Positions 1,357-27,035 are shown, counted from the stretch's first letter. The stretch: 64,000 nt of DNA from Oopsacas minuta (GCA_024704765.1 JAKMXF010000321.1:124001-188000), one strand, 5' to 3'. Notes: generated from the letters alone by a model not told the origin. Made by a program: numbers and translations.

Positions 1357-4300
1357 CTATAAAATGGCGCAAACTTTAGAAGTGACAGGGTCGCTATTGT
1401 AACTTAAATTAGTCTCAACAACATTATCTAAAGATATATTCTGATTGGTAGACTCTTGGATGCTAGTTCTAGTTCCAATTTCCTCTATTTCCTCGTCACT
1501 TGTCTCAAAAATAGGCGCCAAAACCCCTGGTCTTCGAGGTACCAAATATATCTGTTCGAATTCTGGATCTTTAGGAAATAACCCCGGCATTTCATTGGCT
1601 GACAAACATTCGAACTGATCGCTGAATTCCAATACACCATTTATGTCGTTAAGATTATCAGTTAGTACTGGATAGCTTTGAGTATATTCACCTAATGGAT
1701 GTGAACATATTAAACAGGAACTATAAAATAACCACGGGTAATATGGAACTAACATTACCGAATTGATGTATTTTATCGCTCTGTTTGAAAAGATAAGGTC
1801 CTGTTTCAAATAGGATATTCTCTTCCAAACTGGAACTAACAGAAACCATCCCAATTGAGCCACAAACGGAACTATATGCCACAACACTTCCTGCCAAATT
1901 GCAATCAATAGAAGTAATAGACTCTCCCAGACAGAAACTAGCCAATAGAACCAATTCTGTAAATTCCAATAAATGGATGTATCCGTCTAAACTGGAACTA
2001 ATTATATAGCTTGGTTCCAGTTTGTTTAAGTATTTCACTCCTGTGATTGTATCTTTATGAACTCTAGATTGTGTCGCAAGTGGTTTGCCCGCCCCAATTG
2101 TCCATCTATTATGAAAAATATAAATACAAAAAGTGTCAAACTGTGTCTGTATTCACATACTTATAAATTGTGCCATCTTGCGTGCCACAAATTGCCTGCC
2201 ATTTATGAGAGATTGTGTCAATACACGTGACACTATCGGAAGTGTGAAAAGTTGAAACTAAAGTAGCTTGGCTCACATTCCAAAGCGTAACAGTTCCATC
2301 TTGACAACCAGCTAGTAGGTAAACTATGTTATCTCTAAATAATAAATAATTGCATTCAAACATTACAAATTGATTGGCTAATGTAGAATTAATCACAAAA
2401 CACCTTTTCAATATGACTAAAGTAAACGTATAAAATTGACCCTAGAGTACAAACGGGACACCAAACAAACAAACAAACAAACAAACAAACAAACATTATC
2501 GTAAACATAATTACAAGTGACTCAGAGGTAATTTGAATAATAGAAATTGCAGTTTCATATAATCATCATGTAATAGGAACTAAAATATGATTATTTAATT
2601 ACATAACAGGAATTTATATAAAGTCATTCCACGGGACAATGGGGACCATATGGTGCCCCGATGGGTCCACTTTATGATACTATGCTCCTCCCTCTCAATG
2701 GGGCAATAAAGATTCTAGGGTGTGTACACATTCCATTTTAACATACTAGTTGTTAGGAAGGAAAATTCAAAATCGAACGAAATATAAGTGAATTTCCTTA
2801 CTTGTAAACAAACTGTAGTTCAGATATAGATTCAGTTAGTTCCGATTCAAGTTCTAGTTTCCAGTCAATATCATCAATCTTCCATAAAAATATGTTCCCT
2901 TTCCTGTCACCTGAAGCTATTATCTCTCCTTCCTCTGTTATTGCGACACTTGTAAGTGGCGCATTGTGTCCGTAATAATCACTAATTGCCCGGGCGTTTT
3001 CTCCATGCCACAATTTTAGTTTCCTAAAATGTATTAAAATTGTATTTCTCAGTTGCAATTGGAACTCTGAAACTATGGATAAGTGTGGACAGCAACTATA
3101 TCTCCATTAAGGATATAAATTAATCAATTAGTTCCATATGTAACCATGGATAATATACTTAGTTCCGTTTTGTAATAAACTGCTTCTGAATAGATTACAA
3201 ACATGGACCATGGATTGTCACTAAATTTAGAATCCAAAGAAATTATTGGCTGATTTGAGCTAGGAATTTCAATCCCAATTGTTAGTTCCGATTACATATA
3301 TTTTGGTTCCTATAATTCCAAATTTACCTGTCATTACCAGCTGTAAGGAACCTCACAGAATCTCTATGTATAACTATATCATTAATAGGTTGAGGATGTC
3401 CCCATAGTGATAGTTCCTCTTTACAAGAATTGAGGTCTAGAATGGTCACATACCCATCTGCCCCAACCGTTACTAAGAACTGCTCACACGGTGAAAACCT
3501 GATTCGACTAATCAAACTATCGTGTGAGTTAGTTGTCCTGAATCCTTGAAATGAAAATAATTAGAAATTTTGATAGGCCAAGGGGGGATTTATGGGACCA
3601 ATTCACACCTCCATAGATTTCCAATTGTTGTATATATGGACATGATCAAGGTGTGAAAATATGAACTTCAGAATTTCATGACCCCAAGGACCATGGGGCA
3701 AACCTACCTTCTAAAAATAGGTCCTTCCCAATTAACCATACTTTTATAGTTCCATTTACATCTCCACTCACACCCCACATTCCATCTGTCGCCATTGTAA
3801 CACACTTGATAGCACAGGAATGTCCAGAAATAGAATTCTTGTTCACTCCAGTTTTTGGGTCAATGAGCATAATTCTTCCGTTATTGGAACCAATCAAACC
3901 AAGCAAGCAATTTGATTGGGCGAGGCATACACTATTAATAGTATAGGAATTGGCGGGACTTGATTGGATGAGCGTACATTCTTTTGTCCAAGTTTTAACA
4001 GTTCCATCCAAACTGGAACTAAGAAATATGTCACCTAGAACTGAGACTGAAGCTATAGGTCCGATGTGTCCACTCATTGTGCCACAATTTCTACTCGATG
4101 CCACATTCCAGGTCTTAAGAAAAGTATCATCTGAACCTGTGACAAACATCTGGTCATTCTGTAACAAAGCCAGACATCTGATTGGTTGGTTATGAGCTTG
4201 TAGAGTGTATATAATATCACCGAAACAGGAACTATCCCTGTGACAGTTCCATATACATATTTTGCCATCTGATCCAGCGGACAAACCAATGCGTCCATTT

Positions 4301-7300
4301 TTAGTCAAAGCGACACAATTGACAGAATCTACAAAACAAATTCGATCCATAAATTAATGTGGAACTAATAACAGAACCAATATTTCAATAAATAAAGAGT
4401 GTCAGTGGATTAATAAATAAGTATAAATGAATAAATAGGTTAGTAACGGAATTGGTATAATGGAATCTAAAAGTATTAATAAAGTGATTTCCTATCAAAC
4501 CGCTTGCTTCTCGTTGCTACGATTTTCGTTGGAATATTGGAGATATCCCGGACTGCCCATGGGTCCACCTCATCAATATTTGTCACCTTCCATCTACGGT
4601 CCTTTGGCCTCTTATAAACGGCTACCCTTGATGCCTCTTCTGCTAATTGGATCGTAGAGGGAGATTCCTCTAATATGGGGTCTAAATTGGCGTGCGTCGA
4701 CACATTCCTTAAACGCTGAGTGGCACCGGGTGTTACAAATGTGTCGAGGACATGGAAGTGTTTGTCTAGCTCATCCCAAGTTAGTTCCGTATTAAGTTCC
4801 GGTTTGAATTTATTGATTTCTTTCAGCAAAATGTTCTCATCCTGTGCCAGGCGGATAGCACCTGAATGCGGCATTCTGAGTGGTAGAGCTGCGACCATGT
4901 CTTCATCAGAATCGGAACTATTCCCAGGAATTTCTTTGGTTAAGAAATCTGAAATATCCCCCGGGGTAACACGCAGGTCGTCATCAAGTGATATCTTTCG
5001 TTTCAGAACTGTTTTAGTTTCTTTGGGAACTAACCCTTGCTTTGGTTCCGATTTGGCATAGAATGCTTTGGGCGGGGATGTATTAGTTGCAGTTGGATCA
5101 AATATTCTACGTTTCTCAGCAACCATTTCTGAGATAGTTCTCTCTTTTGACACCTTTCTTTTGGAAAATTCCGATTGTCCATTTTGGTTTCTAAGTGAGC
5201 GAGAAGGCGAGAATCTATGTTCATAAGGCGCCAGTTTAGTTTCAGGAATTTCAGTTTTGGCATAACTCAAACTTCTCGAACGTCTTACATCAGGTGCTAG
5301 TTCCAATTTGTCGGTTAGTTTCAGCTCCAAATCATCGCTAGAATAGGATTTCCCACCAGTAGTGGAACCAGCCAATGAGAGATGAGACACCTGATCTTCT
5401 GTCTGTGGTATGCCTATTAATTGTCCGATATAAGCTGACTTCTGATTGGCTAATCCATCAGTGAATACCGGGTTCTCGTGTATGACACCTTCCTGTACAA
5501 ACATGTCGGAAATAGAATTTCTGTGAGAACTGGAACTCTTAAACGAATGTTTGCGACGCAAGGAAATATTGGTACTGTGTCGTGAGCCACCTTTTGAACC
5601 ATCTGAGAGGTGATGGATATATTTCCGGACCTGTAGCATGGATATGAACAGGCATACTACGGTAACGAATACACACAAGATAGTTCCAATAACAATGGCA
5701 ATTATAACACCTTCTGATAACATGATTGGCTGGAAAGGTGACACAATTATTCTTTGTTTCAATTGTGTGCATTCATTGGCTATCAAACATTGATACTCGC
5801 CTGTGTCTGATATTGTAGCATCCTGAATTGATATGGTGTTAGTTCCAGTTCCAATCAAGGAACCATTCCGGAACCAAGAATAAGATAGTTCCGGTATCCC
5901 ATCGGCTCTACAGAAAATATCAAAATCTTCACCAAGAGTTATAAAATAGTTGAGGGAAGAGAGAACTTTGATTGGCTGATAGACTGTAATTTGATTGGTT
6001 GAATAAATTTCTGACGTCATAATATTGCTACACTCGTAATCTCCGGAATTTGATTGGTCAACTGGGTCGAATTTTATTGAAACCATTTGTTCGTAACTTT
6101 GGTTTATCCTGCCATTCACTTTCCAGATTATATGACTTTCAACGCCTGGCTGTAAATTAGAACTACAGTTCAGGCACCAACTAGAACCAATCAGGACACA
6201 TTCCTCAGTGGATTGAGTGTTGAAAATTGCTTTTGTAAACAATAATACAAACAATAAACAAATTTTAGAATTCATATTGAATGTCTATTGAAATTAAACC
6301 ATAATTTCTCTAAACTTCTATTGGCCAATCTTCTAACCGATGAATATTCTCACAGACAAATTATGGTTACTTAAAATATACAAACAAATGTTAATCTAAA
6401 CATACCAGAGTGTCCATTTAGTCGCTGAAGACAGGTGGCATTCTTTGTGTCCCACAGACGAATTGTGGCATCATCTGAGCCAGAAATAGCTATAGTGGCA
6501 TTGACAGACATGTCACAACTTTTGACACCATTTTCATGACCAACGAATACTAGCAACAGATTTCCTGCAAAGGAATGTTGAAATAAAAATTCTATATTTT
6601 GAAAATATAAATTTAATTTTACCAGTTTTGAGTTCCCAAAGTTTGAGAGTTGAGTCGATTGAAGAACTTAGGACTAGCATTCCATTTGACTCATTGGTAT
6701 CTTTGATACGAATGCAAGTTATTTCGTCACGATGGTTACAAAACTCATAAACAAATTCCGTTCCTATCTCATCGTTGCCAGGAGACAGAGGAATAAAATT
6801 TGGAGGTTCAAAGGAATTCATGGCAGATTTGATTAAGCCAATCAAAAGTGAGTATTTCGTGTCTATTTTAGGATTACGCAATTTCAAACCCGAGTCTTTG
6901 ATTGGCTCATTTTTGAATACAAAAGCCATCAAATGATTGGTCAGAATCTGCGGTAAACATTTAGGATCTCGACCAATAGAATTGTAGGAATTCTGTAACG
7001 CTTCTTTTAATATTCTGAGTTGACCAATTAAATCTGACTCTTCATTCGACGGCAATTTATCGAACAAAAGTGAGAAATCTTTCAAAATTTCAAAAGTACC
7101 CATCGATTCTATTTTTAGCATCAACCATCTCAGATTGGTAAGCAGACCAATCAAAACACGAGTTTGTCCTGTCTCAACTAAATGTAATGGCAATTCTAAC
7201 ATATTTCTTGGATTGAAATATGCACATTCCTCAGTGATAACTGCGTTGCTATGGGCGACAGAGGTTGGTTCCAATTGGAATACATTTTTAAGTTTCGTAT

Positions 7301-9834
7301 TCTGATAGTAATCTGCCATTAATTTGTGATAGTACATTATTTTCTCTGGAGTAGACAGGTATCGTTGTTGTGCTACATTTCTAAAAATAGAATGACTCCA
7401 TCTGATGACACAATATGACCCAGGGGCGACAACGTGAACCAGAAATGGGAAGCTTAATTCCAGTTTCAGCCTTGCCCAGAAAATAGGAGAGATCCGTTGG
7501 TTTTGACTGGAGTTAGGTGTTAGTTCCTGTTTTAGTTCCAAATTGTTTGAAAGTAAATCTTCTAATTCACATTCTGTAACTCCGTACCTGAGAAAATAAA
7601 CTGAATAACTCTTAAATCTGATAGGTCAGGATATTTGTGAATATTTCGCTAATATCTAACATTCCTAATGACAATACTCCGTTGCTAGTACCAACCAGTT
7701 CCTCAATAAATTCGGACACCAAATATGAAAAATGAAAATCCGTTTTATATAATATATTTATGCCTATTTGTCTCAGCCAATCATCATAATACCTAAGTAA
7801 ATTAGTGACCGTAACTATATCATGCTTAGTTCCAATTTACCATCTGAAACACTGATAAGGATTTGGCCAATCAATTTGCCTACATATATTACGCACTTAC
7901 CTAGCAACCGTAATGATAGATAGGCATTCTGTAACGAAAAGTTTTGAATATTTATTTTCAAGTTTTGTAAAAATTGAATTAAGCATTCCACCGACACTAA
8001 CACTCAATTCTGATTGGTCTACTTTAGAGAAAGATTTCCACTTTATTGCATCTTTGAGTAACAAATTCACATAAAATGGTGTTGTTAAACTGGAACTATG
8101 CATGAAACTAAGTACAATATGGAACTGAGATGATGTCATCTTTCTATTATGTGCTGACAATAAACTTGATAAGAATAAAGATAGTTCCGGTTCTGGGAGG
8201 GGCGATAGTTCCAGAAAGGATTCATTTCGTAGAAGAGATCGTGCGCCAAATAAACTTAATCTCTTCACTTCCGGTCTTGTCGTCAATATCAACCGGACAT
8301 TAGGCGCCAAATAGTTCGGTAACCAATCAATACTACTACCATTATCAATGAAATCCAGATAGTCTACGCCGTCCAATAGAATTACGAGTTTCTTATTGAT
8401 CGGTTCGCCAATGAGCCTATTGAAATATTCCTTCAGTTTAGTGTAAGTGTTAGGTGGATTCTGATTGGTTAGCCCTAGAATGGATGCCAGCTGTTCACAT
8501 ATACTTCTCAAAAGCGGGCAAATTGATTGGGCGGTTAGAGTTAAGCCTACAAATCTAACAACCAATCTTAATTCAGGGTTGTTTTCCAAAATTCGCGCCA
8601 CTATTCTTGAGATGACAGCTGTTTTCCCGGTACCTTGATCTCCAAATAATACTAACGGTGTTCTGAAATTAGAACCATCAATATAGGTGTTAATAGAAGC
8701 GACACAATTATCTGCTACTTTGTGGAACCCCCATTTTAAATGTGACATATTCTTCGCAAATTCCAAATGTGTGTTAACTTCGTTGCTAAGCTGAGACGAA
8801 AGAATGTTTGGAATTTTATTAGTAGAATTCTTTATGAGATTTTCGGTCGAACTTTTGAAAGAATTTTCAAAATCGGACAAATATTCTTTGAAACTTTCAG
8901 ACTTATTTGTGTCGATTAAATCTTGTCCAAACACTAATTTATGCTCGATAATATTCTCAGTTCCAATTCCAGTTCCATCTTGAGGAATCTTCAGTTCTTT
9001 TAACGCGTTTAACGCTTTTTTAGAATCTTGGTCTATTTCTTTAGTTCCATTTAGAAGATCGATATATTTAGTAACATAATCATGTGATAACAAAAATTTG
9101 TAAATATCAATAATTTGAGTTTTGAAGCATAGACAATGGTCATTCGGGTTGCCATGGTGATTCAACAAGCCTTCATATATCTCCAATTCGAATATGGAAC
9201 TAGCGATATTGTGTAGTTTCAGTTTGTCATTCTTGAAAACTGTTTTGGCAGCTCGGCGGAGTGAGCGACCAATCAGGTGGTTTTCTTTCTGCCACTTTTG
9301 TCTATCTGCATATTTGTCGTTGCTATGTTTCGTATCATGAGAGAAGAAATATTTATAACGAGTTGAAATCGGAACTAACGAATAATCATTCGAGAGGGAA
9401 TTGCCATCAATCCGGAACCAATCAAAGAACATTTTCTTAGCAATCGAATCATCCATGGTCCCGATTAGAGATTGCACCTCTTGGGAGCTAAATGTGTCTG
9501 GAAGTGGCCGATACCCATAACGCATGCCCGCCAAAATAACCAACCCAGGTCCCAAGCTGATAACACGTGAGTATACCACTTCTTGGCGACACAATTGAGC
9601 CACCAAAATGTCATTTATTATATCATCATTCATGTGATATCTCAAATCGATAAGTTGAAACTGAAGTCCATAATTCTCACAAAATTCTCTGAAGTGGTCG
9701 TAGAGTTTATTGATAATTTGGCGCTCAAAATGTTTATCCTGATAAACGGAACTAACATAAATACGGATATGTGAATACCCTATATGTGTTAGTTCCAGTT
9801 TGAAATCTGAGGAATGACTGAGCTTTTCTGGCAT
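1357..9834 (-). CDS. NACHT and WD40 repeat protein (NWD1/NWD2/TEP1-like), about 9-10 exons, ending in CAIL
   Basis: N-terminal IRIYVSS...LIDLRY domain, Walker A GDQGTGKT, Walker B ILLDGVD, many GH..V..W WD40 repeats; phase-compatible splices checked at 6405/4329 and 1758/1692; some internal exons only approximately placed. Confidence 0.85.
2462..2494 (+). repeat. (AAAC)n microsatellite
   Basis: Direct reading. Confidence 0.9.
4476..6275 (-). CDS. Intronless type I membrane protein: signal peptide, two Ig-like domains, TM helix, long cytoplasmic tail; nested in an NWD intron
   Basis: Hydrophobic N-terminus; C..IIW..DSGDYEC and FCRADG..YSW..DTGEYQC Ig signatures; TM VIIAIVIGTILCVFVTVVCLFI. 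Confidence 0.85.
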   Translation of the reverse strand: MNSKICLLFVLLFTKAIFNTQSTEECVLIGSSWCLNCSSNLQPGVESHIIWKVNGRINQSYEQMVSIKFDPVDQSNSGDYECSNIMTSEIYSTNQITVYQPIKVLSSLNYFITLGEDFDIFCRADGIPELSYSWFRNGSLIGTGTNTISIQDATISDTGEYQCLIANECTQLKQRIIVSPFQPIMLSEGVIIAIVIGTILCVFVTVVCLFISMLQVRKYIHHLSDGSKGGSRHSTNISLRRKHSFKSSSSHRNSISDMFVQEGVIHENPVFTDGLANQKSAYIGQLIGIPQTEDQVSHLSLAGSTTGGKSYSSDDLELKLTDKLELAPDVRRSRSLSYAKTEIPETKLAPYEHRFSPSRSLRNQNGQSEFSKRKVSKERTISEMVAEKRRIFDPTATNTSPPKAFYAKSEPKQGLVPKETKTVLKRKISLDDDLRVTPGDISDFLTKEIPGNSSDSDEDMVAALPLRMPHSGAIRLAQDENILLKEINKFKPELNTELTWDELDKHFHVLDTFVTPGATQRLRNVSTHANLDPILEESPSTIQLAEEASRVAVYKRPKDRRWKVTNIDEVDPWAVRDISNIPTKIVATRSKRFDRKSLY

Positions 9835-21117: not shown

Positions 21118-21440
21118 TTCACAGATTTGTTGCTATTATATACAATAAATATTATCTTTAAATAGTAGCCAGGGTGATTATTCATATTTTAACACCCTAT
21201 GACGGGGGGACATAACATATAATCATATACGACATACCATGAATATATTCACCAACGCCCTAACATGCTACTGTGACGTGTTAGGTCCCAGTTTCCATGG
21301 TTATCTCGCTGGTCTTATACCGAACGGCTGCGAGGAGGACACATGGTCCATATTGTGACCCATGAGATCAAAAACATATATAACATTAGATAAAATAATC
21401 AATAATTACTAGACTACAACATTAGTTCCAATTGGAACTA

Positions 21441-24400
21441 TCAATAAGCAATAGCAGAACCTTGAATATCTAATTCCTTACAAGAAATATTATCAAATAC
21501 CCCTGTGACATCTTCTATCCCATTCAACTTGTCCAACACTTGGGCGGTTTCTTCGAATTGATCAGCTGTCAGCTGTGAATGCAATCTGGGAAAAAATTCT
21601 GTCCTTTGTTCTATAATTATAAATTTCTTTTCCCGAATTAGTTTCGAAGCAAATTGGTATGATTCCAGATCAGTTTTGAACTAAAATATGGAAAATTAAT
21701 TCAGAAGCTATTTTCATATTAAAAGGTGTGAAAATATGATTAATCACATGATAAATATGTGTCATGGTACAGTTCGGACTTTGTAAACTCAGAATAGTAT
21801 TCGATGCATTCACTTACCCCTCACAATGTGTGATAATTCACTTACAAGAACCAATTATAGTTCCCTGTTGTTAATATAGAACCATGAATTATATGAAAAA
21901 AATAGAATTAAATAAATTGTCCAGGAGAGTACTCCAGTCCTTATCGAGGGTGTTAAGTGACCTGTGAACGCTAAGTGAGGTCATTTTGCTGACACAATAA
22001 CTACACCTTCCCCGGATGGTCCTACTTTGATCAGTCCAATTTTTGTAGCCCGATTGGGCCAAACACTAGCCCAATAAAGATACAATTCACAATTGAAAAC
22101 TCAAAATTCCACTTTAACCTGCCAAAATTCTGTATCAGACTCATCTTTCTGTATAGAACAATTTTCCGCGCCTATTTCTATTGCAAATTCCTCTATCTAA
22201 ATTGGAACTGAAACTAAACATTTATTCATATAAATACAAAACTATACTCACATCAATTGCAGTGGAATCTGGAATGACTACATCAATTATACCTAAGAAA
22301 ATCTGAAATTAGAACAAATTGGAACTAACTTTTGCGAGATAATATTAATATTTCTCTGGGTACACTAGTTTCTATGGTAACCACAGTTGAACATCGGAAT
22401 TTTCCATTTTGTGTGACAAAATCCTTGAATTCCTTTATACTGCCTGACAACCCGAAATATGTCTGTTTGGCGGCAATTATAACAGTTCCATTTGGAACTA
22501 AGGTTTCATCGATTAGTTCCAATAAAGTGAGATAATTGCTAACTTCATAAATTGTTTCTGACATCAAAATTATGTCGAATATAAGCGAATTTTCTTTCGA
22601 ATATGGAACCAAGCTCGACCATGAACCACTGATATATGTTGCATATTTGAATACATCGTCATGGTTACCGATATTCATGAAAGAATGTGGAATAGTTGCA
22701 CATTGCAAAACTTCAATATTGTATTCCTGGAACCAAACTTTTCCCCCTCTTTTGAGCGCCAAAATCCCAGGTAGCCCGATTCCAGTACCTAGTTCCAATA
22801 TCATTTTCCCGCCAAACTCTACTTCCTGACTGGTCAAATATTCTACTAAATCAACAGCCCCTTCCCATAATCTGAAACCACCTTCATAGATACCCGGAAC
22901 TAAATCAGATGGACCCTTAAACCAATCAAATAACAGTGTGTTGTCCTCTGTTTTGGCGCCTGGATAAATTCCATAAATATTTTCGAGTTCTTTGAGAGTT
23001 GGATTGAGGGATAAATTCAATTCTATTCCGTTTATTACACGAACAGTAGGAGTGGAGTAATATGGAACTAAAGTTGGTTCCTGCTGCAGGAATGTGAGTT
23101 CTACCTTTGTGACACTTTTATCCAAAAACTCAGGTTTAGTTTCGATGGTTTCATTTGTGTCACTTGTGACATCAATTGGTGTAAAAAAATTAAATTTGAA
23201 AGCCATTTTTGTATACAAAATTACTCGTAAATGTATGTATTACAAAATTCAATAAAAATATGGTTGGATAACAATTCCACATTTTTGTGACACAATTTTA
23301 ATCTTTTCCAAGGTGGCAACTGAATAATTCAATATTCGATTGGGCCAAATATATTCGCAAAATACCGAAAATAATACAACTGGTACAACCTCGATTATCG
23401 GAACCAACACCCTAGCCATAGTCCCTATTCCACCATGTACAAACCACCTCGATCCTCCAGGTGTTATGATATCCTAATTTTTAGACCTGACCCCAATATT
23501 GGATCACTTACGGTACAACCAAATATTCGTTTCGAAAGCTTTCAGCTTGGGTTTTATCTATTCTTACAAACCCATATAATAAAATTTAGAACAAAAATAT
23601 AATACAAAAATTCAAATTCTTAGTGGAACTATGACTTATCAAAACCCTTTACGAAGTGAGGTGTTACAATTATACCGTATGATCCAAAGGACAGCATATG
23701 ATTGGTCAAGCACAACAACAGACAAAACACAAACAGAGAAACAATACATAATAACAGAATCAAGAAAACAATTCAAAAACAACAAACACCTAACAAACAC
23801 AAACATTATTCAAGACAGAATTACAGAAGGCAAATACAGACTTGAATTGGCGCTTCATTACAAGAATCCATTTCCACGGCTAATTAGTTACCCGCTCAAT
23901 TACGTCACCAATAGTAGAGGAAGGAAAAATACAAAAATATTTCGGCAATCAATACCCGTTTATGTCAAATCAACTTTTGATAAATAACCTTATTTGTTAG
24001 TATAATTCTTACAAATACAACTGTGTACTCATATGCCTATTGCACCATTTTGATAGTTGCCCCTTTCAATGATCTCCCTCACTGAGGGGTGTAGCCAAAT
24101 ACCAAGGAGGTAAACATGGAAACTGGGACATATCACGTTAGGGGTGTTGATGAATATATTCGTGTGTGTTTCAAGTAATACAACAGATCATATCTATTAC
24201 TTCAAATTATATATACAAAATTCACACTCTATAAACAAAACAAACAAATAGTTCCAGTTCCAGTTATGATGCTTTCAATAACCCAAGATCCTTAAGCTCC
24301 TTTTCATTTTCCTTCATGAAAAACTCAATTTGGGGAATTTTGTCCCCTCTTTTTGTCGGTTTCACTGCCTCCAAAAGTTGATTGAAAGTAAATTCTCCCA

Positions 24401-26113
24401 AATGATCAAAATGGAAAATAATATCCATTATCCCAGTCATTGCAATCTTCTCAACCTCTGACAATAGTGGTTCATATTCCTTCTTCATTTCCAAAAATTC
24501 CTCATTCGAGAAACTCCCCGGTTTGAAAAAATCGAGCAGAAACACTCGAGACTTTAAGGATCGTTTTAAGGGTGTACCGAGGATCGTCTTGTGATCATCG
24601 TCCATAACAAATCGAATCAACAAACTATAATTATGGTCACGTTTATAATGGGTCTTTCGGAAGTCATCCATCTTCCTAATTTCAGTGATCACATCTTTAA
24701 ACTTCGGCAGGTCTAAGTAATCCAACCATTCTTCCATGAGACTCAAACTAAAGAGTCTTTTGGTTGCTAATAGATAGATCAAAGCCATCCCTCTTGTTTT
24801 TGGCGTTTCATCTGGTTTTTCAAATCGCCCCAAATCCCATGTTTGGAAACAGTATAGGAAAGCTATCCGATGAACCGTTTCCATATTACCAATAAGATGG
24901 GCATTGTCGCTTAAAAGGTTTCTGGCGCTTTCCGGTAGTTCCATGAATTGTCCAATTTTGTTCCATTCTGGGTCATGCAATTGAGGGAAATTTTCTGGTT
25001 TGAAATGTGTGCCTTTTGGTATTCTTCCAAATAGTGTTTGTTCTTGCTCTCTTAGTTGTTTGTCCTCTCCATAGTAAAGAGTGTTTTGTGCCATTCGTTG
25101 TTGCTAATTTGTTGGTACTTTGTTATTAAAATATGAAATAAACAAATATAAATCTCTATTTACACCTCTGTGCTGACGTAATCATAGTAGTAAACACAAA
25201 TAATCGCATTTAACCGAAGGGAAAATATTGATACAAACCTTTCTCTAAGAAAAATGAAGAATCACTTCCAGCTTGTAATATCGTTAGACTAGAAATAGGA
25301 ACTATAAATTATATAGTTCCAGATTAAAATTTGATGAATAATACTGTATTGAAGCCTATTACATTATGTCGGTGAGTATAATTTTCAATTCAACTCCCTG
25401 GCAACGTAAAGGCATAAAGGAATGTTGTAACTAACCTGTGTTTTCTGGAAATTTTTTTCAACTCGGATCTTGATTGGTTGATTATACTCGGGGAACCATA
25501 AATACAAACCAGAACTAAGTAATTTGAAGGACCTCTCAAAATAACCTTATGTTCTTTGAAAGATTTTGCCTAAAATATAGTGTTACAATATGGAACTATG
25601 GATAGTTGCAATTGGAACTAACCAAACTTATAGTTAAAGCTCGTTCTAAGGTCGCTTTTGGAATCTGTAATTCTTTTCCTCTGTCCATAAGATCAATTAA
25701 TTCCGGATGTTGTTCCGAGTTACCATTTTCTAAATTAGAAAAAGGTGTGACATGTGTCGCATATGCCCATGCCATTTCGAAAATAATATTATTAATTTCA
25801 ACACCCTCTAAGGAGACAAAAGACTTAGTTCCAATTGGAACTATAACTTACTAGCTACATGTTTTCGTATTCGTGTGACATGTCTTGAAATCATATTACT
25901 CCTCTGCATATCGGCTACCAATTTCTTTCTAGCTATTTTCGACCATTTATTGTGTCCCGCGAATCTCAGTTGTGTCTCGTTTAACTGGAACTTAATTACA
26001 ACTTTATGTTGTGTCAATTTTGAATAGGTTCCGGTTTGTAACACCTGTCTTTGTGCAAACATAAACAAGGTTGGTAAATACCATAGTCTATTTAATATTC
26101 GATTTGTTAGCAT
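21441..26113 (-). CDS. TACO1: Translational activator of cytochrome c oxidase 1 (YebC/PmpR family), 7 exons
   Basis: FAGHNKWSKIARKK start; ..IPKATLERAL; exon 25288-25239 SLTILQAGSDSSFFLEKG; exons 22292-22252 and 22196-22119 IIDVVIPD..IEEFAIEIGAEN; last exon 21680-21441 FKTD..EFFP..IEDVTGVFDNI; phases checked across the 25288-21441 exons. Confidence 0.88.
22325..23206 (-). CDS. METTL18: Histidine protein methyltransferase (HPM1/METTL18), intronless, nested in TACO1
   Basis: MAFKFNF start; DLVPGIYEGGFRLWEGAVDL; SAM motif ILELGTGIGLPG; SETIY; AAKQTYFGLSGS. Confidence 0.9.
   Translation of the reverse strand: MAFKFNFFTPIDVTSDTNETIETKPEFLDKSVTKVELTFLQQEPTLVPYYSTPTVRVINGIELNLSLNPTLKELENIYGIYPGAKTEDNTLLFDWFKGPSDLVPGIYEGGFRLWEGAVDLVEYLTSQEVEFGGKMILELGTGIGLPGILALKRGGKVWFQEYNIEVLQCATIPHSFMNIGNHDDVFKYATYISGSWSSLVPYSKENSLIFDIILMSETIYEVSNYLTLLELIDETLVPNGTVIIAAKQTYFGLSGSIKEFKDFVTQNGKFRCSTVVTIETSVPREILILSRKS
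23631..23987 (+). CDS. LYRM1: LYR motif-containing protein 1, nested in TACO1
   Basis: EVLQLYRMIQR..W..EKQYIITESRKQFKNNKHLT..RLELALHYKNPFPR matches the LYRM1 pattern. Confidence 0.85.
   Translation: MTYQNPLRSEVLQLYRMIQRTAYDWSSTTTDKTQTEKQYIITESRKQFKNNKHLTNTNIIQDRITEGKYRLELALHYKNPFPRLISYPLNYVTNSRGRKNTKIFRQSIPVYVKSTFDK
24264..25094 (-). CDS. Intronless 276-aa protein with putative tandem death-effector-like (DED) domains, nested in TACO1
   Basis: IAFLY..GMALIYLLATKRLFSLSLMEEWL and RVFLLDFF..FSNEEFLEMKK..KRGDKI resemble DED helices (inference). Confidence 0.5.
   Translation of the reverse strand: MAQNTLYYGEDKQLREQEQTLFGRIPKGTHFKPENFPQLHDPEWNKIGQFMELPESARNLLSDNAHLIGNMETVHRIAFLYCFQTWDLGRFEKPDETPKTRGMALIYLLATKRLFSLSLMEEWLDYLDLPKFKDVITEIRKMDDFRKTHYKRDHNYSLLIRFVMDDDHKTILGTPLKRSLKSRVFLLDFFKPGSFSNEEFLEMKKEYEPLLSEVEKIAMTGIMDIIFHFDHLGEFTFNQLLEAVKPTKRGDKIPQIEFFMKENEKELKDLGLLKAS
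25095..25186 (-). promoter_or_regulatory. Shared 5' region/promoter, copy 1, with CRE/ATF-like TTACGTCA
   Basis: Near-identical to 26942-27035; both directly abut an ATG. Confidence 0.7.
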
Positions 26114-26305: not shown

Positions 26306-26941
26306 TTAGTTCCAGAATTGTAAATGTGACTTATGAAAATCTTTCATTTTTTTTACTGCCTTAACTTTTCCGTTATTAAATAAAAACACTTGTAATATAT
26401 CACAAACGTCAGTAATCTTTGTCCTCGACAGTTCGTCATACAAAACAACCTCCAAGAGTGTTTTACACTGTTTATCTTTCACAGGTGACAAATTATACAT
26501 ACTTCTAAGTTCCAAATTATCGTCAGGTGTGAACATTTCTTCTCTTAAAATTTCGACAAGTAATTCCCGGAATTTAAGGCACCGAATTGAAAGGGTTCCG
26601 TCAGTGTCATTCAAAGATGCTTCAACGTCCTGCATAGCTTCGTGATCGGATTCCAAAAATTCCCGATTTGTACCCAATTCATCCTCAATTTGTCCCGCCA
26701 GTTTATCTAAACAACTTACGCGAAGAAATCTGATTAACAGGTGACAATTTATATTTTCTTGGTTTGACAGTATTTCTAAGAAATTTGTAGAAATATCCAC
26801 GCAGTCTCTGTTTTCTTCATTGTAAAGATATGAAAGTATTCTCACATTCCTTTCAGTTAGATAGTCGTTAAGATTAGAGATTTTTGTCGCTAACCCTTTG
26901 GGCACATTTTCTAAAGATCTTAGACAATTTCTTTCCGCCAT
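26306..26941 (-). CDS. Intronless 211-aa putative tandem-DED protein
   Basis: LNDYLTERNVRILSYLY..HLLIRFLRVSCLDKLAGQI and FRELLVEILREEMFTPDDNLELRSMY resemble DED helices 1-2 and 5-6. Confidence 0.55.
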   Translation of the reverse strand: MAERNCLRSLENVPKGLATKISNLNDYLTERNVRILSYLYNEENRDCVDISTNFLEILSNQENINCHLLIRFLRVSCLDKLAGQIEDELGTNREFLESDHEAMQDVEASLNDTDGTLSIRCLKFRELLVEILREEMFTPDDNLELRSMYNLSPVKDKQCKTLLEVVLYDELSRTKITDVCDILQVFLFNNGKVKAVKKMKDFHKSHLQFWN

Positions 26942-27035
26942 TTGTTTTTGCTAATTTGTTGGTATTTTTGTTGTTAAAATATGAAATAAACAAATATAAA
27001 ATCTCTATTTACACCTCTGTGCTGACGTAATCATA
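26942..27035 (-). promoter_or_regulatory. Shared 5' region/promoter, copy 2
   Basis: Near-identical to 25095-25186. Confidence 0.7.

Follow-up and report, generated by a model that had tools for sequence, protein, structure and literature searches.

Classic examples of nested genes are the pupal cuticle protein gene within Drosophila Gart and the nests in introns of dunce, where independent genes are located in introns of a host that is spliced across them. The same arrangement occurs at the locus of the mitochondrial translation factor TACO1 in the glass sponge Oopsacas minuta, whose genome is compact; we analyzed it within a contiguous stretch of 64,000 nucleotides of genomic DNA from JAKMXF010000321.1 (the window). 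Intron 27b of human NF1, which is much larger, harbors OMG, EVI2A, and EVI2B, and all three are encoded antisense to NF1. TACO1 intron 4 similarly contains three complete genes in one intron; however, unlike at NF1, two of the three guests are encoded on the host strand and the guests lie within 2.9 kb. Most classic nested genes are antisense or located in long introns, and we know of none in which the coding end of a guest overlaps the 3' splice-site region of its host. A further precedent comes from human CLASP1, one intron of which contains RNU4ATAC; there, as is probable for TACO1 intron 6, a U4atac gene equipped with a promoter of its own resides in an intron of a protein-coding host. The sponge U4atac-like gene differs in that its host is TACO1, its location is conserved in seven genomes, and its score falls 0.1 bit below the Rfam threshold.

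Francis et al. (2023) report that nested genes number 2432 (12.4%) in the glass sponge Aphrocallistes vastus and that only 83 are annotated in O. minuta, the latter number being ascribed to the annotation method. The guests described there are likewise intronless, conserved between species, and under-called in O. minuta by automatic annotation. Compared to the nests presented in that study, the TACO1 locus is distinguished by three protein genes in one intron of 2.9 kb, with an snRNA gene in a nearby intron, and by a same-strand guest whose stop codon abuts the host acceptor. A keyword search of the main texts of two papers did not return the TACO1 nest. The locus is a well-supported new example of a gene nesting already documented in glass sponges and not a new kind. 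It represents an RNA-supported, evolutionarily conserved case of densely nested genes in an animal of an early-branching lineage, and is a compact natural test case both for the passage of a host pre-mRNA through same-strand poly(A) sites and for the coexistence of a guest's coding end with host 3' splice signals.

Exon structure of TACO1 and splicing across intron 4

TACO1 is encoded on the minus strand by seven exons (26113..21441) with lengths of 262+107+134+50+41+78+240 = 912 nt, corresponding to 303 codons plus stop; arithmetic and exon-by-exon translation showed that the frame is held at every junction. Exon 1 (25852..26113), which starts with the ATG at 26113, matched PF20772 positions 1-29 and exon 2 (25623..25729) positions 39-67 of the same family, while exon 7 including the stop codon (21441..21680) matched PF01709 positions 96-160 of 160 (E 3.1e-5); the exons were tested separately, and each one alone stays below the Pfam whole-protein cutoff. 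The PDB entries that matched exon 7 best were human TACO1 and mouse TACO1 (5EKZ, residues 253-293 of 294), in both cases at the C-terminus. PF20772 and PF01709 follow each other in exon order, and the closest solved structures are those of eukaryotic TACO1 rather than of another fold; collinearity with the C-terminal half of YebC/TACO1 had been proposed in the first-pass annotation. Exon 3 (25436..25569) displayed 55-64% identity across six relatives, and exon 5 (22252..22292) 69-85% in those relatives where it was detected; exon 6 (22119..22196) was likewise recovered at the relatives' loci. Exon 4 (25239..25288) is the last one before the nest and ends in a donor, AAAG/GT; each of the seven genomes has a canonical donor here. 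As previously noted, the sequence reads GAGAAAG/GTTTGT at the exon end (25239) and TTAG/GTATAATT at the acceptor (22292). Exon 1 encodes an N-terminus resembling a mitochondrial presequence and, after it, the first part of the YebC N-domain.

Evidence for splicing was obtained from X4, a single public run from one sample and one study, consisting of assembled contigs that indicate the presence of sequences rather than transcript ends, strand, or reliable levels. The run is not labelled as RNA on record; we infer that it is RNA-like because its depth is very uneven and drops to zero in both flanks, and because it contains an adapter loose end. All six GT..AG joints of TACO1 were carried by X4 contigs, including those at 25852/25729, 25623/25569, 25436/25288, and 22119/21680. 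Intron 4 (22293..25238, minus strand), which contains the nest and has a length of 2946 nt, was skipped exactly by a contig joining 25239 to 22292 on the minus strand. By the refuting condition that the first-pass annotation had set for itself, namely that no transcript joins the two TACO1 halves, its reading is thus not refuted. The depth at this nest-spanning joint was 1202, compared to 1116-1434 at the other five joints, and the joints were absent from three DNA-like runs, also of this sample, in which depth was flat. The host exons flanking the nest are hence connected in a transcript. The guest open reading frames are wholly intronic.

O. minuta was compared with six related ENA assemblies, seven genomes in total. 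In each of them, TACO1 retains its seven exons in collinear order. In the six relatives, TACO1 exons 1-4 are followed by the LYR gene (-) and METTL18 (+) and then by exons 5-7; the synteny that had been suggested as a check therefore occurs within the corresponding intron in six out of six. The content of the nest is otherwise variable, with two to five genes per genome, and the intron reaches 5-6 kb in relatives. Divergence is deep (58-71% protein identity), but the layout is nonetheless stable. At two more distant METTL18 loci (L009 and L010), TACO1 and LYR were absent within 10 kb.

The three nested protein genes

The 2946-nt interval contains three complete open reading frames at 22325-23206 (-), 23631-23987 (+), and 24264-25094 (-), as had been described. 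The one closest to exon 5 (22325-23206, on the host strand) is intronless and encodes, counted from its ATG, a METTL18/Hpm1-like histidine methyltransferase of 293 aa with a Methyltransf_16 domain (PF10294, 40.1 bits versus a cutoff of 21). Its best PDB match was human METTL18 (4RFQ, 6.5e-27; METTL21B, 4e-10), and its named homologs are annotated as histidine protein methyltransferase 1. These comparisons agree with the earlier assignment and support that the predicted protein is closest to METTL18 and not to METTL21 or other lysine methyltransferases. As a member of the METTL18/Hpm1 family, the protein would be predicted to methylate a histidine of the ribosomal protein uL3. The stop codon TAG (22325-22327) is separated from the TACO1 acceptor by 32 nt, close to the 30 nt estimated before, and by 15-32 nt across all seven genomes.

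The middle gene (23631-23987, plus strand, opposite to the host) is also intronless and encodes 118 aa with a Complex1_LYR domain (PF05347, 42.6 bits versus a cutoff of 24.8). The three nearest named Atlas clusters were all LYRM1 (0.92, given without alignment or E-value), and we refer to the gene as LYRM1-like, consistent with its earlier identification. A word search of the protein collection yielded only three short unnamed fragments and no self-hit. The start codons of the LYRM1-like gene and METTL18 face apart across 424 nt (23207..23630; about 425 bp had been claimed). Within this spacer, a putative shared promoter region, a degenerate TATGGGTTTGTAATAA-like block was recognized by eye in five of the seven genomes, at a distance of about 50-75 nt from the start codon of LYR; exact 8- to 10-mers common to at least five genomes were not found there. 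Given the conserved geometry, a bidirectional promoter in the spacer is plausible, as is an overlap of the METTL18 3' UTR with TACO1 exons. A conserved AATAAA or ATTAAA does not occur after METTL18; within the first 130 nt, such a hexamer is present only in O. minuta, where an AATAAA lies 99 nt past the stop codon, inside intron 5.

The third gene, at 24264-25094 on the host strand, encodes 276 aa without an intron and is annotated in the public record. Only three database matches were obtained, itself included, and by sequence comparison the gene was found only in glass-sponge-like genomes; orthologs occupy the corresponding position at loci L002, L004, L005, and L006. Neither the protein nor the four orthologs had a Pfam match, a PDB profile search was empty, and an AlphaFold model based on the 5-sequence alignment reached a pLDDT of 40 with no confident fold. 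The label 'DED-like' that had been given to this reading frame is therefore not sustained. DED (PF01335) matches occurred in four of seven members of a 211-aa family encoded upstream (best 6.6e-6). This family is a distant paralog family of the 276-aa gene, and the DED hits are confined to it; the link between the two detected by hhalign is weak (E 0.004, probability 9%). Directly upstream of the 276-aa gene, a promoter/5' UTR block (25095..25170, minus strand) is near-identical to a block at about 26942-27017, which precedes the non-nested 211-aa gene (alignment A3). The block contains TTACGTCA (CRE-like) and TAAATA (TATA-like), and the shared promoter-like sequence is about 100 bp in length. 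DNA contigs break and rejoin at this repeat (records 7 and 14).

A separate observation concerns the motif AGTTCCA/TGGAACT, which occurs 157 times in the window against 10 expected, a 15-fold enrichment, and overlaps several stop codons. A role as gene-end or poly(A) signal was rejected, as the motif is located at the stop in only 4 of 26 long open reading frames and displays no positional peak.

Transcription, processing, and public annotation of the locus

We consider it highly probable that this is a true nested-gene locus in which a single seven-exon TACO1 is spliced across an intron with three separate intronless genes. RNA polymerase would read from exon 4 through the 2.9 kb containing the guests, and the spliceosome would join exon 4 to exon 5, yielding an mRNA for a TACO1 protein of normal length (303 aa). 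Each nested gene is most likely transcribed as a unit of its own. Being located on the other strand, the LYRM1-like gene needs its own promoter; the 276-aa gene would use the TATA/CRE-like block also found at its non-nested paralog, and METTL18 would be initiated head-to-head with LYR from a promoter of its own. The stop-acceptor gap of METTL18 implies that the host polypyrimidine tract and probably the branch point abut or overlap its coding end, and that its mRNA must end in the downstream exons or introns of TACO1. Host transcripts would ignore the nested poly(A) sites; one possible means is that U1 snRNP, bound at the donor upstream, suppresses cleavage, as has been described in vertebrates.

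In the public record (GCA_024704765.1), the locus is represented by two chimeric models, one combining the 211-aa reading frame with the N-terminal part of TACO1 and the other METTL18 with the C-terminal part, and the LYR gene is missing. Such a split of TACO1 had been predicted by the first-pass annotation. The chimeras carry both YebC/TACO1 Pfam families; the N-terminal model passes over the donor of exon 4 and continues as far as the first stop codon, at 25210, and the other (P0004) links METTL18 with a portion of exon 5 via a 52-nt intron (22330..22278). That these models are right, i.e. that two separate fused genes exist and no intact TACO1, is very improbable. The fusion of METTL18 to exon 5 happens to be in frame; however, the 52-nt intron occurs in no X4 contig, whereas exons 4 and 5 are joined there, the GT donor of the fusion at the METTL18 stop is absent in relatives, and the seven collinear TACO1 exons in seven genomes argue against a split. 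Another reading would be that the halves of TACO1 are transcribed apart and joined by trans-splicing. Read-through of two same-strand poly(A) sites would be costly, but nothing direct speaks for separate halves: X4 coverage is low and continuous in all bins of intron 4, consistent with a precursor, the donor and acceptor of this intron are ordinary and conserved, and even the 5-6 kb introns of relatives are still modest in size. We regard this reading as exceedingly improbable. Correction of the annotation replaces two chimeric proteins by an intact TACO1, adds the LYRM1-like gene, and places a likely U4atac snRNA gene. Chimeric models of this type distort orthology tables as well as claims on gene loss in sponges.

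Other readings concern the way in which the same-strand guests are released. The 276-aa gene, and perhaps METTL18, might be cut from the TACO1 precursor by spliced-leader trans-splicing and polyadenylation, making the intron an internal operon. An acceptor-like YAG occurs 1-9 nt upstream of the ATG in the 276-aa family (five of five genomes) and in TACO1 (six of six; in O. minuta TTTTAG, 1 nt upstream), which would fit trans-splicing, and a trans-spliced leader of about 37 nt is reported for A. vastus by Francis et al. (2023). Taken together, these sites and the reported leader leave room for processing from longer precursors. However, the TATA/CRE-like block of the 276-aa gene is that of its non-nested paralog, no conserved acceptor is located near the METTL18 ATG, and a primary transcript of the 276-aa gene's own, if trans-spliced, would give the same footprint. 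In X4, the bins of LYR and the 276-aa gene were far deeper than the TACO1 exons; the highest depth in the region was observed over two bins covering most of the LYR reading frame, and the contig of the 276-aa gene reached 3-6x the depth of host exons, which is weak evidence against an internal operon. An internal operon appears distinctly unlikely. The contig over METTL18 (22370-23190) had a depth of 317, near the intronic background of 133-210. The METTL18 mRNA might extend over exons 5-7, with both intervening introns (5 and 6) removed and the TACO1 poly(A) site shared. Such shared 3' exons would fit the short stop-acceptor gap in all seven genomes, the lack of a conserved poly(A) hexamer in the few hundred nt past the stop, and the stability of the arrangement despite protein divergence. 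The METTL18 stop would, however, lie far upstream of two exon junctions, which normally triggers nonsense-mediated decay; O. minuta has the AATAAA in intron 5, and an X4 contig that continues from exon 6 into intron 6 without splicing (record 23) would equally fit transcripts ending within intron 6. We consider shared 3' exons unlikely. A combination of both, in which the TACO1 primary transcript is a multi-product precursor with trans-spliced same-strand guests and a METTL18 that shares the downstream exons and poly(A) site of TACO1, is likewise unlikely, although the conserved 15-32 nt between METTL18 stop and host acceptor and the conserved acceptors preceding the ATG of the 276-aa gene would be compatible with it; if true, several unrelated genes would depend on a single promoter and a single 3' end, and glass sponges would have retained this layout.

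A U4atac-like snRNA gene in TACO1 intron 6

Within TACO1 intron 6 (21681-22118), a U4atac-like snRNA gene is predicted at 21934..22050 on the plus strand, antisense to the host. The match to Rfam RF00618 was full-length with 52.9 bits (gathering threshold 53, E 3e-8), and full-length matches of 40-47 bits were obtained at the corresponding place and strand in all six relatives. This antisense U4atac-like gene near the nest, present in seven of seven genomes, is a new observation of the analysis. Upstream elements at 21871..21913 (plus strand) are conserved in the seven genomes (alignment A5) and comprise a PSE-like block at 21871-21889 (about -54) and a TATA-like block at 21905-21913 (about -25). 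The Sm site AATTTTTG is invariant in seven genomes; across these, compensatory changes occurred in 5 of 22 pairs, and both hairpins, the 5' and the 3' stem-loop, are kept.

Structure and splicing of the host gene TACO1

The window contains a TACO1/YebC gene of seven exons on the minus strand (exons 1 to 7 at 26113-25852, 25729-25623, 25569-25436, 25288-25239, 22292-22252, 22196-22119, and 21680-21441). The exon lengths total 912 nt, corresponding to 303 codons plus stop, and the frame is therefore kept; every exon is open when translated singly. All tests of family membership were performed on single exons and not on the joined protein. In exon-by-exon Pfam searches, exons 1 and 2 matched positions 1-29 and 39-67 of TACO1_YebC_N, and exon 7 matched positions 96-160 of 160 of the second/third-domain model, all collinear with the family models. 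Among solved structures, exon 7 comes closest to the C-terminal ends of mouse and human TACO1. At intron 4 (22293-25238), the splice sites proposed by the first-pass annotation proved exact, with donor GAGAAAG/GTTTGT and acceptor TTAG/GTATAATT. Three complete ORFs, here referred to as guests, lie within this intron, the nest.

This DNA is present in four public runs from one sample and one study, three of which were taken as DNA based on flat depth and contiguous contigs. No record lists the fourth run, X4, as RNA, but its behaviour is that of RNA and it was read as such. Its depth is 0 in both flanks and reaches up to about 24,000, one of its contigs terminates in adapter, and its contigs contain six joints, all GT..AG on the minus strand, exactly at the six introns predicted beforehand from the sequence. 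The joints skip 438, 55, 2946, 147, 53, and 122 nt at depths of 1116-1434. The 2946-nt skip corresponds to 22293-25238; hence, the two halves of TACO1 are joined across the nest, as had been proposed. X4 consists of assembled contigs from a single sample, from which neither the ends nor the strand of transcripts, nor reliable levels, can be read. The O. minuta genome paper describes the joint preparation of RNA-seq, DNA-seq, and mate-pair libraries, which fits the split into RNA-like and DNA-like runs. One X4 contig runs out into adapter letters at 21500, 59 nt ahead of the TACO1 stop, and another departs from the window sequence at 22216, in intron 5, into more than 255 unrelated letters.

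Identity, expression, and annotation of the nested genes

The guest at 22325-23206 (minus strand) had been named METTL18. This identity is supported by a Methyltransf_16 domain above threshold, by human METTL18 as best solved relative (4RFQ, 6.5e-27), far ahead of METTL21B, and by the named homologs, which are histidine protein methyltransferase 1; the METTL18 search also recovered a protein under the name of Oopsacas minuta. The second guest, LYR, at 23631-23987 (plus strand), encodes a Complex1_LYR domain that passes the threshold; the named Atlas clusters closest to it are LYRM1 (0.92), a lead rather than proof of LYRM1 identity. For the third guest, an ORF of 276 aa at 24264-25094 (minus strand), the earlier designation "DED-like" is unsupported, as no Pfam or PDB match was obtained, profile search included, and DED matches occur only in the family of a non-nested gene upstream of TACO1, encoding 211 aa (26306-26941, minus strand). 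Among 5.8 billion clustered proteins the 276-aa ORF had only two relatives, both in ENA assemblies, and its AlphaFold model was unusable (pLDDT 40).

The 211-aa family was found only in these glass-sponge-like genomes. From its sequences it does look DED-like, with weak yet repeated matches to PF01335 (DED) in four of seven members (best 6.6e-6) and viral FLIPs as weak top PDB matches. In the TACO1 loci of related assemblies, members lie at 3080-3829, 5494-6717, and 7003-7800 (L002), 2353-2994, 5016-6227, and 6268-7137 (L004), 6161-6820 (L006), and 6001-6648 (L005); some relatives carry additional copies in the TACO1 intron, including a two-domain form of 407 aa. The 276-aa protein may at best be a remote paralog of this family (BLASTP 1.5e-5 against one member; hhalign E 0.004, probability 9%).

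All three guests are free of X4 joints, as would fit intronless genes. X4 word depth was about 22,000-24,500 in two bins over most of LYR, 3,400-7,600 over the 276-aa gene, 1,100-1,400 at host exon joints, and 133-210 on intronic contigs. These contig depths, although not reliable as levels, suggest independent expression of LYR and the 276-aa gene; the depth of 317 over METTL18 says little about its expression.

The first-pass annotation had predicted that gene calling would split TACO1 at the nest, and the public record indeed holds two chimeras and misses one guest besides. The first chimera, a 365-aa product (minus strand), extends from 26941, the start codon of the 211-aa ORF upstream, to 25210, the first stop on read-through of the exon 4 donor. 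The second, P0004 ('Histidine protein methyltransferase 1-like isoform X1', 406 aa, 23206-21441, minus strand), carries Methyltransf_16 and YebC domains. Aligned to the window, it follows the METTL18 ORF to ...SRK and continues with ...IIPDSTAID, which needs a 52-nt intron ending midway through exon 5; this intron is found in no X4 contig. The 276-aa gene is modelled at 24264-25094 (minus strand), encoded on contig JAKMXF010000321.1 of GCA_024704765.1. The missing guest is LYR, which gave no self-hit in the protein collection and is absent from the called genes.

Conservation and geometry of the nest

Homologs of the guests led us to six ENA assemblies, with contig names resembling long-read metagenome assemblies. 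These are very likely other glass sponges, because gene order and AGTTCCA enrichment are common with O. minuta. Exon-by-exon tblastn placed TACO1 exons 1-4 upstream and exons 5-7 downstream of the guests in all six, and LYR (opposite strand) and METTL18 (host strand) lie inside the intron between exons 4 and 5 in all seven genomes, O. minuta included. The remaining content of the nest differs: L007 contains only these two genes, L008 additionally an NHL-repeat gene on the opposite strand, O. minuta the 276-aa gene, L005 its ortholog and one DED-like paralog, and L002/L003 (one genome), L004, and L006 the ortholog and two DED-like paralogs (407 and 265 aa), amounting to five genes in about 5-6 kb. 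Protein identity to O. minuta is 58-71% for METTL18 and 43-58% for the 276-aa gene, indicating that the nest arrangement outlived substantial divergence. At two more distant METTL18 loci (43% identity, without motif enrichment), neither TACO1 nor LYR was found within 10 kb.

In all seven genomes the METTL18 stop codon, noted at first pass about 30 nt from the TACO1 acceptor, is a TAG situated 15-32 nt upstream of the exon 5 acceptor. Given this distance, the METTL18 mRNA must end in exon 5, intron 5, exon 6, or intron 6, or continue to the TACO1 3' end. An AATAAA close after the stop occurs in only one of the seven genomes, O. minuta, 99 nt on, in intron 5. The host polypyrimidine tract starts right after the METTL18 stop codon, and its position suggests that the host branch point is probably at or within the end of the METTL18 coding sequence. 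The exon 4 donor is canonical in all seven genomes. In the short TACO1 intron 5 (22197-22251), a 16-nt block, TTTAGTTTCAGTTCCA, directly before the acceptor is kept in five genomes, which is unusual for an intron at such divergence.

The ATG of the 276-aa gene is located 144 nt from the exon 4 donor. About 100 nt upstream of this ATG are near-identical to the upstream region of the 211-aa gene (25095-25170 versus about 26942-27017, minus strand) and contain TTACGTCA and TAAATA about 60 nt before the ATG. As the block is common to a non-nested gene, it argues for a promoter inside the intron; its near-identity next to barely alignable proteins suggests promoter conversion or recent copying. The LYR-METTL18 spacer measures 153-424 nt in most genomes; at about 50-75 nt from the start of LYR, five genomes share a degenerate block that is conserved. 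In L005 (8769-8880), the spacer is filled by five tandem units of ~22 nt containing AGTTCCAATTTG.

In A. vastus, a trans-spliced leader of ~37 nt occurs on 4% of long reads (Francis et al. 2023). Our spliced-leader check covered the genomic footprint at start codons. A pyrimidine-preceded YAG is present 1-5 nt before the TACO1 ATG (window 26113) in six of six genomes. For the 276-aa family (ATG at window 25094), the YAG is 1-9 nt ahead of the start codon in five of five, although pyrimidines do not precede it in every case; no conserved acceptor-like site precedes the METTL18 ATG among the genomes compared. The sites at the TACO1 and 276-aa starts would fit trans-splicing of those mRNAs, and this footprint does not show that the guests are cut from a host precursor.

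A U4atac-like snRNA gene in intron 6 and repeats in the window

An Rfam scan of the region yielded a full-length U4atac match at 21934-22050 (plus strand), in TACO1 intron 6 and antisense to the host, with 52.9 bits (0.1 bit below the gathering score of 53; E 3e-8). In all six relatives, a match of 40-47 bits lies between exons 6 and 7 on the strand opposite TACO1 (minus strand of the loci: L002 10709-10826, L004 10607-10722, L005 10115-10235, L006 10368-10484, L007 11140-11256, L008 10416-10532). The seven copies share a mean identity of 80%, an invariant Sm site, AATTTTTG, and both hairpins, with compensatory changes in 5 of 22 pairs. Upstream, a conserved PSE-like block at ~-54 and a TATA-like block at ~-25 resemble snRNA promoters. 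Intron 6 is long in every genome (438 nt to 2.4 kb) because it houses this gene. Thus, the 4.7 kb over which the 912 coding nt of TACO1 are spread also accommodate three protein genes and one snRNA gene.

Francis et al. 2023 report 2432 nested genes (12.4%) in A. vastus and only 83 in O. minuta, the latter put down to annotation settings, and describe nested genes as often conserved; the O. minuta genome paper, searched by keyword, makes no mention of nesting. Gene nesting is already documented in glass sponges, and the TACO1 nest is a well-supported further case. It differs from the usual picture in that two of three guests are on the host strand, a guest stop codon (METTL18) abuts the host 3' splice site in seven genomes, and a conserved snRNA gene occupies a following intron.

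The motif AGTTCCA/TGGAACT occurs in 157 copies in the window compared to about 10 expected, and in 23-42 copies per 17-19 kb in the related loci compared to 3-4 in two outgroup loci. In the window, it coincides in part with several stop codons and with sequence flanking start codons; as a general gene-end signal it was rejected, being at the stop in only 4 of 26 long ORFs. A dispersed repeat, with DNA-run word depth 20-50 times that of its flanks, forms a 41-nt inverted pair (24098-24138 and 21276-21316, 83%), with copies also at about 21716-21760 and 24074-24132. One copy separates the convergent 276-aa and LYR genes, another sits within TACO1 intron 6, and one comes just after TACO1; such insertions partly explain the longer spacers in O. 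minuta than in its relatives.
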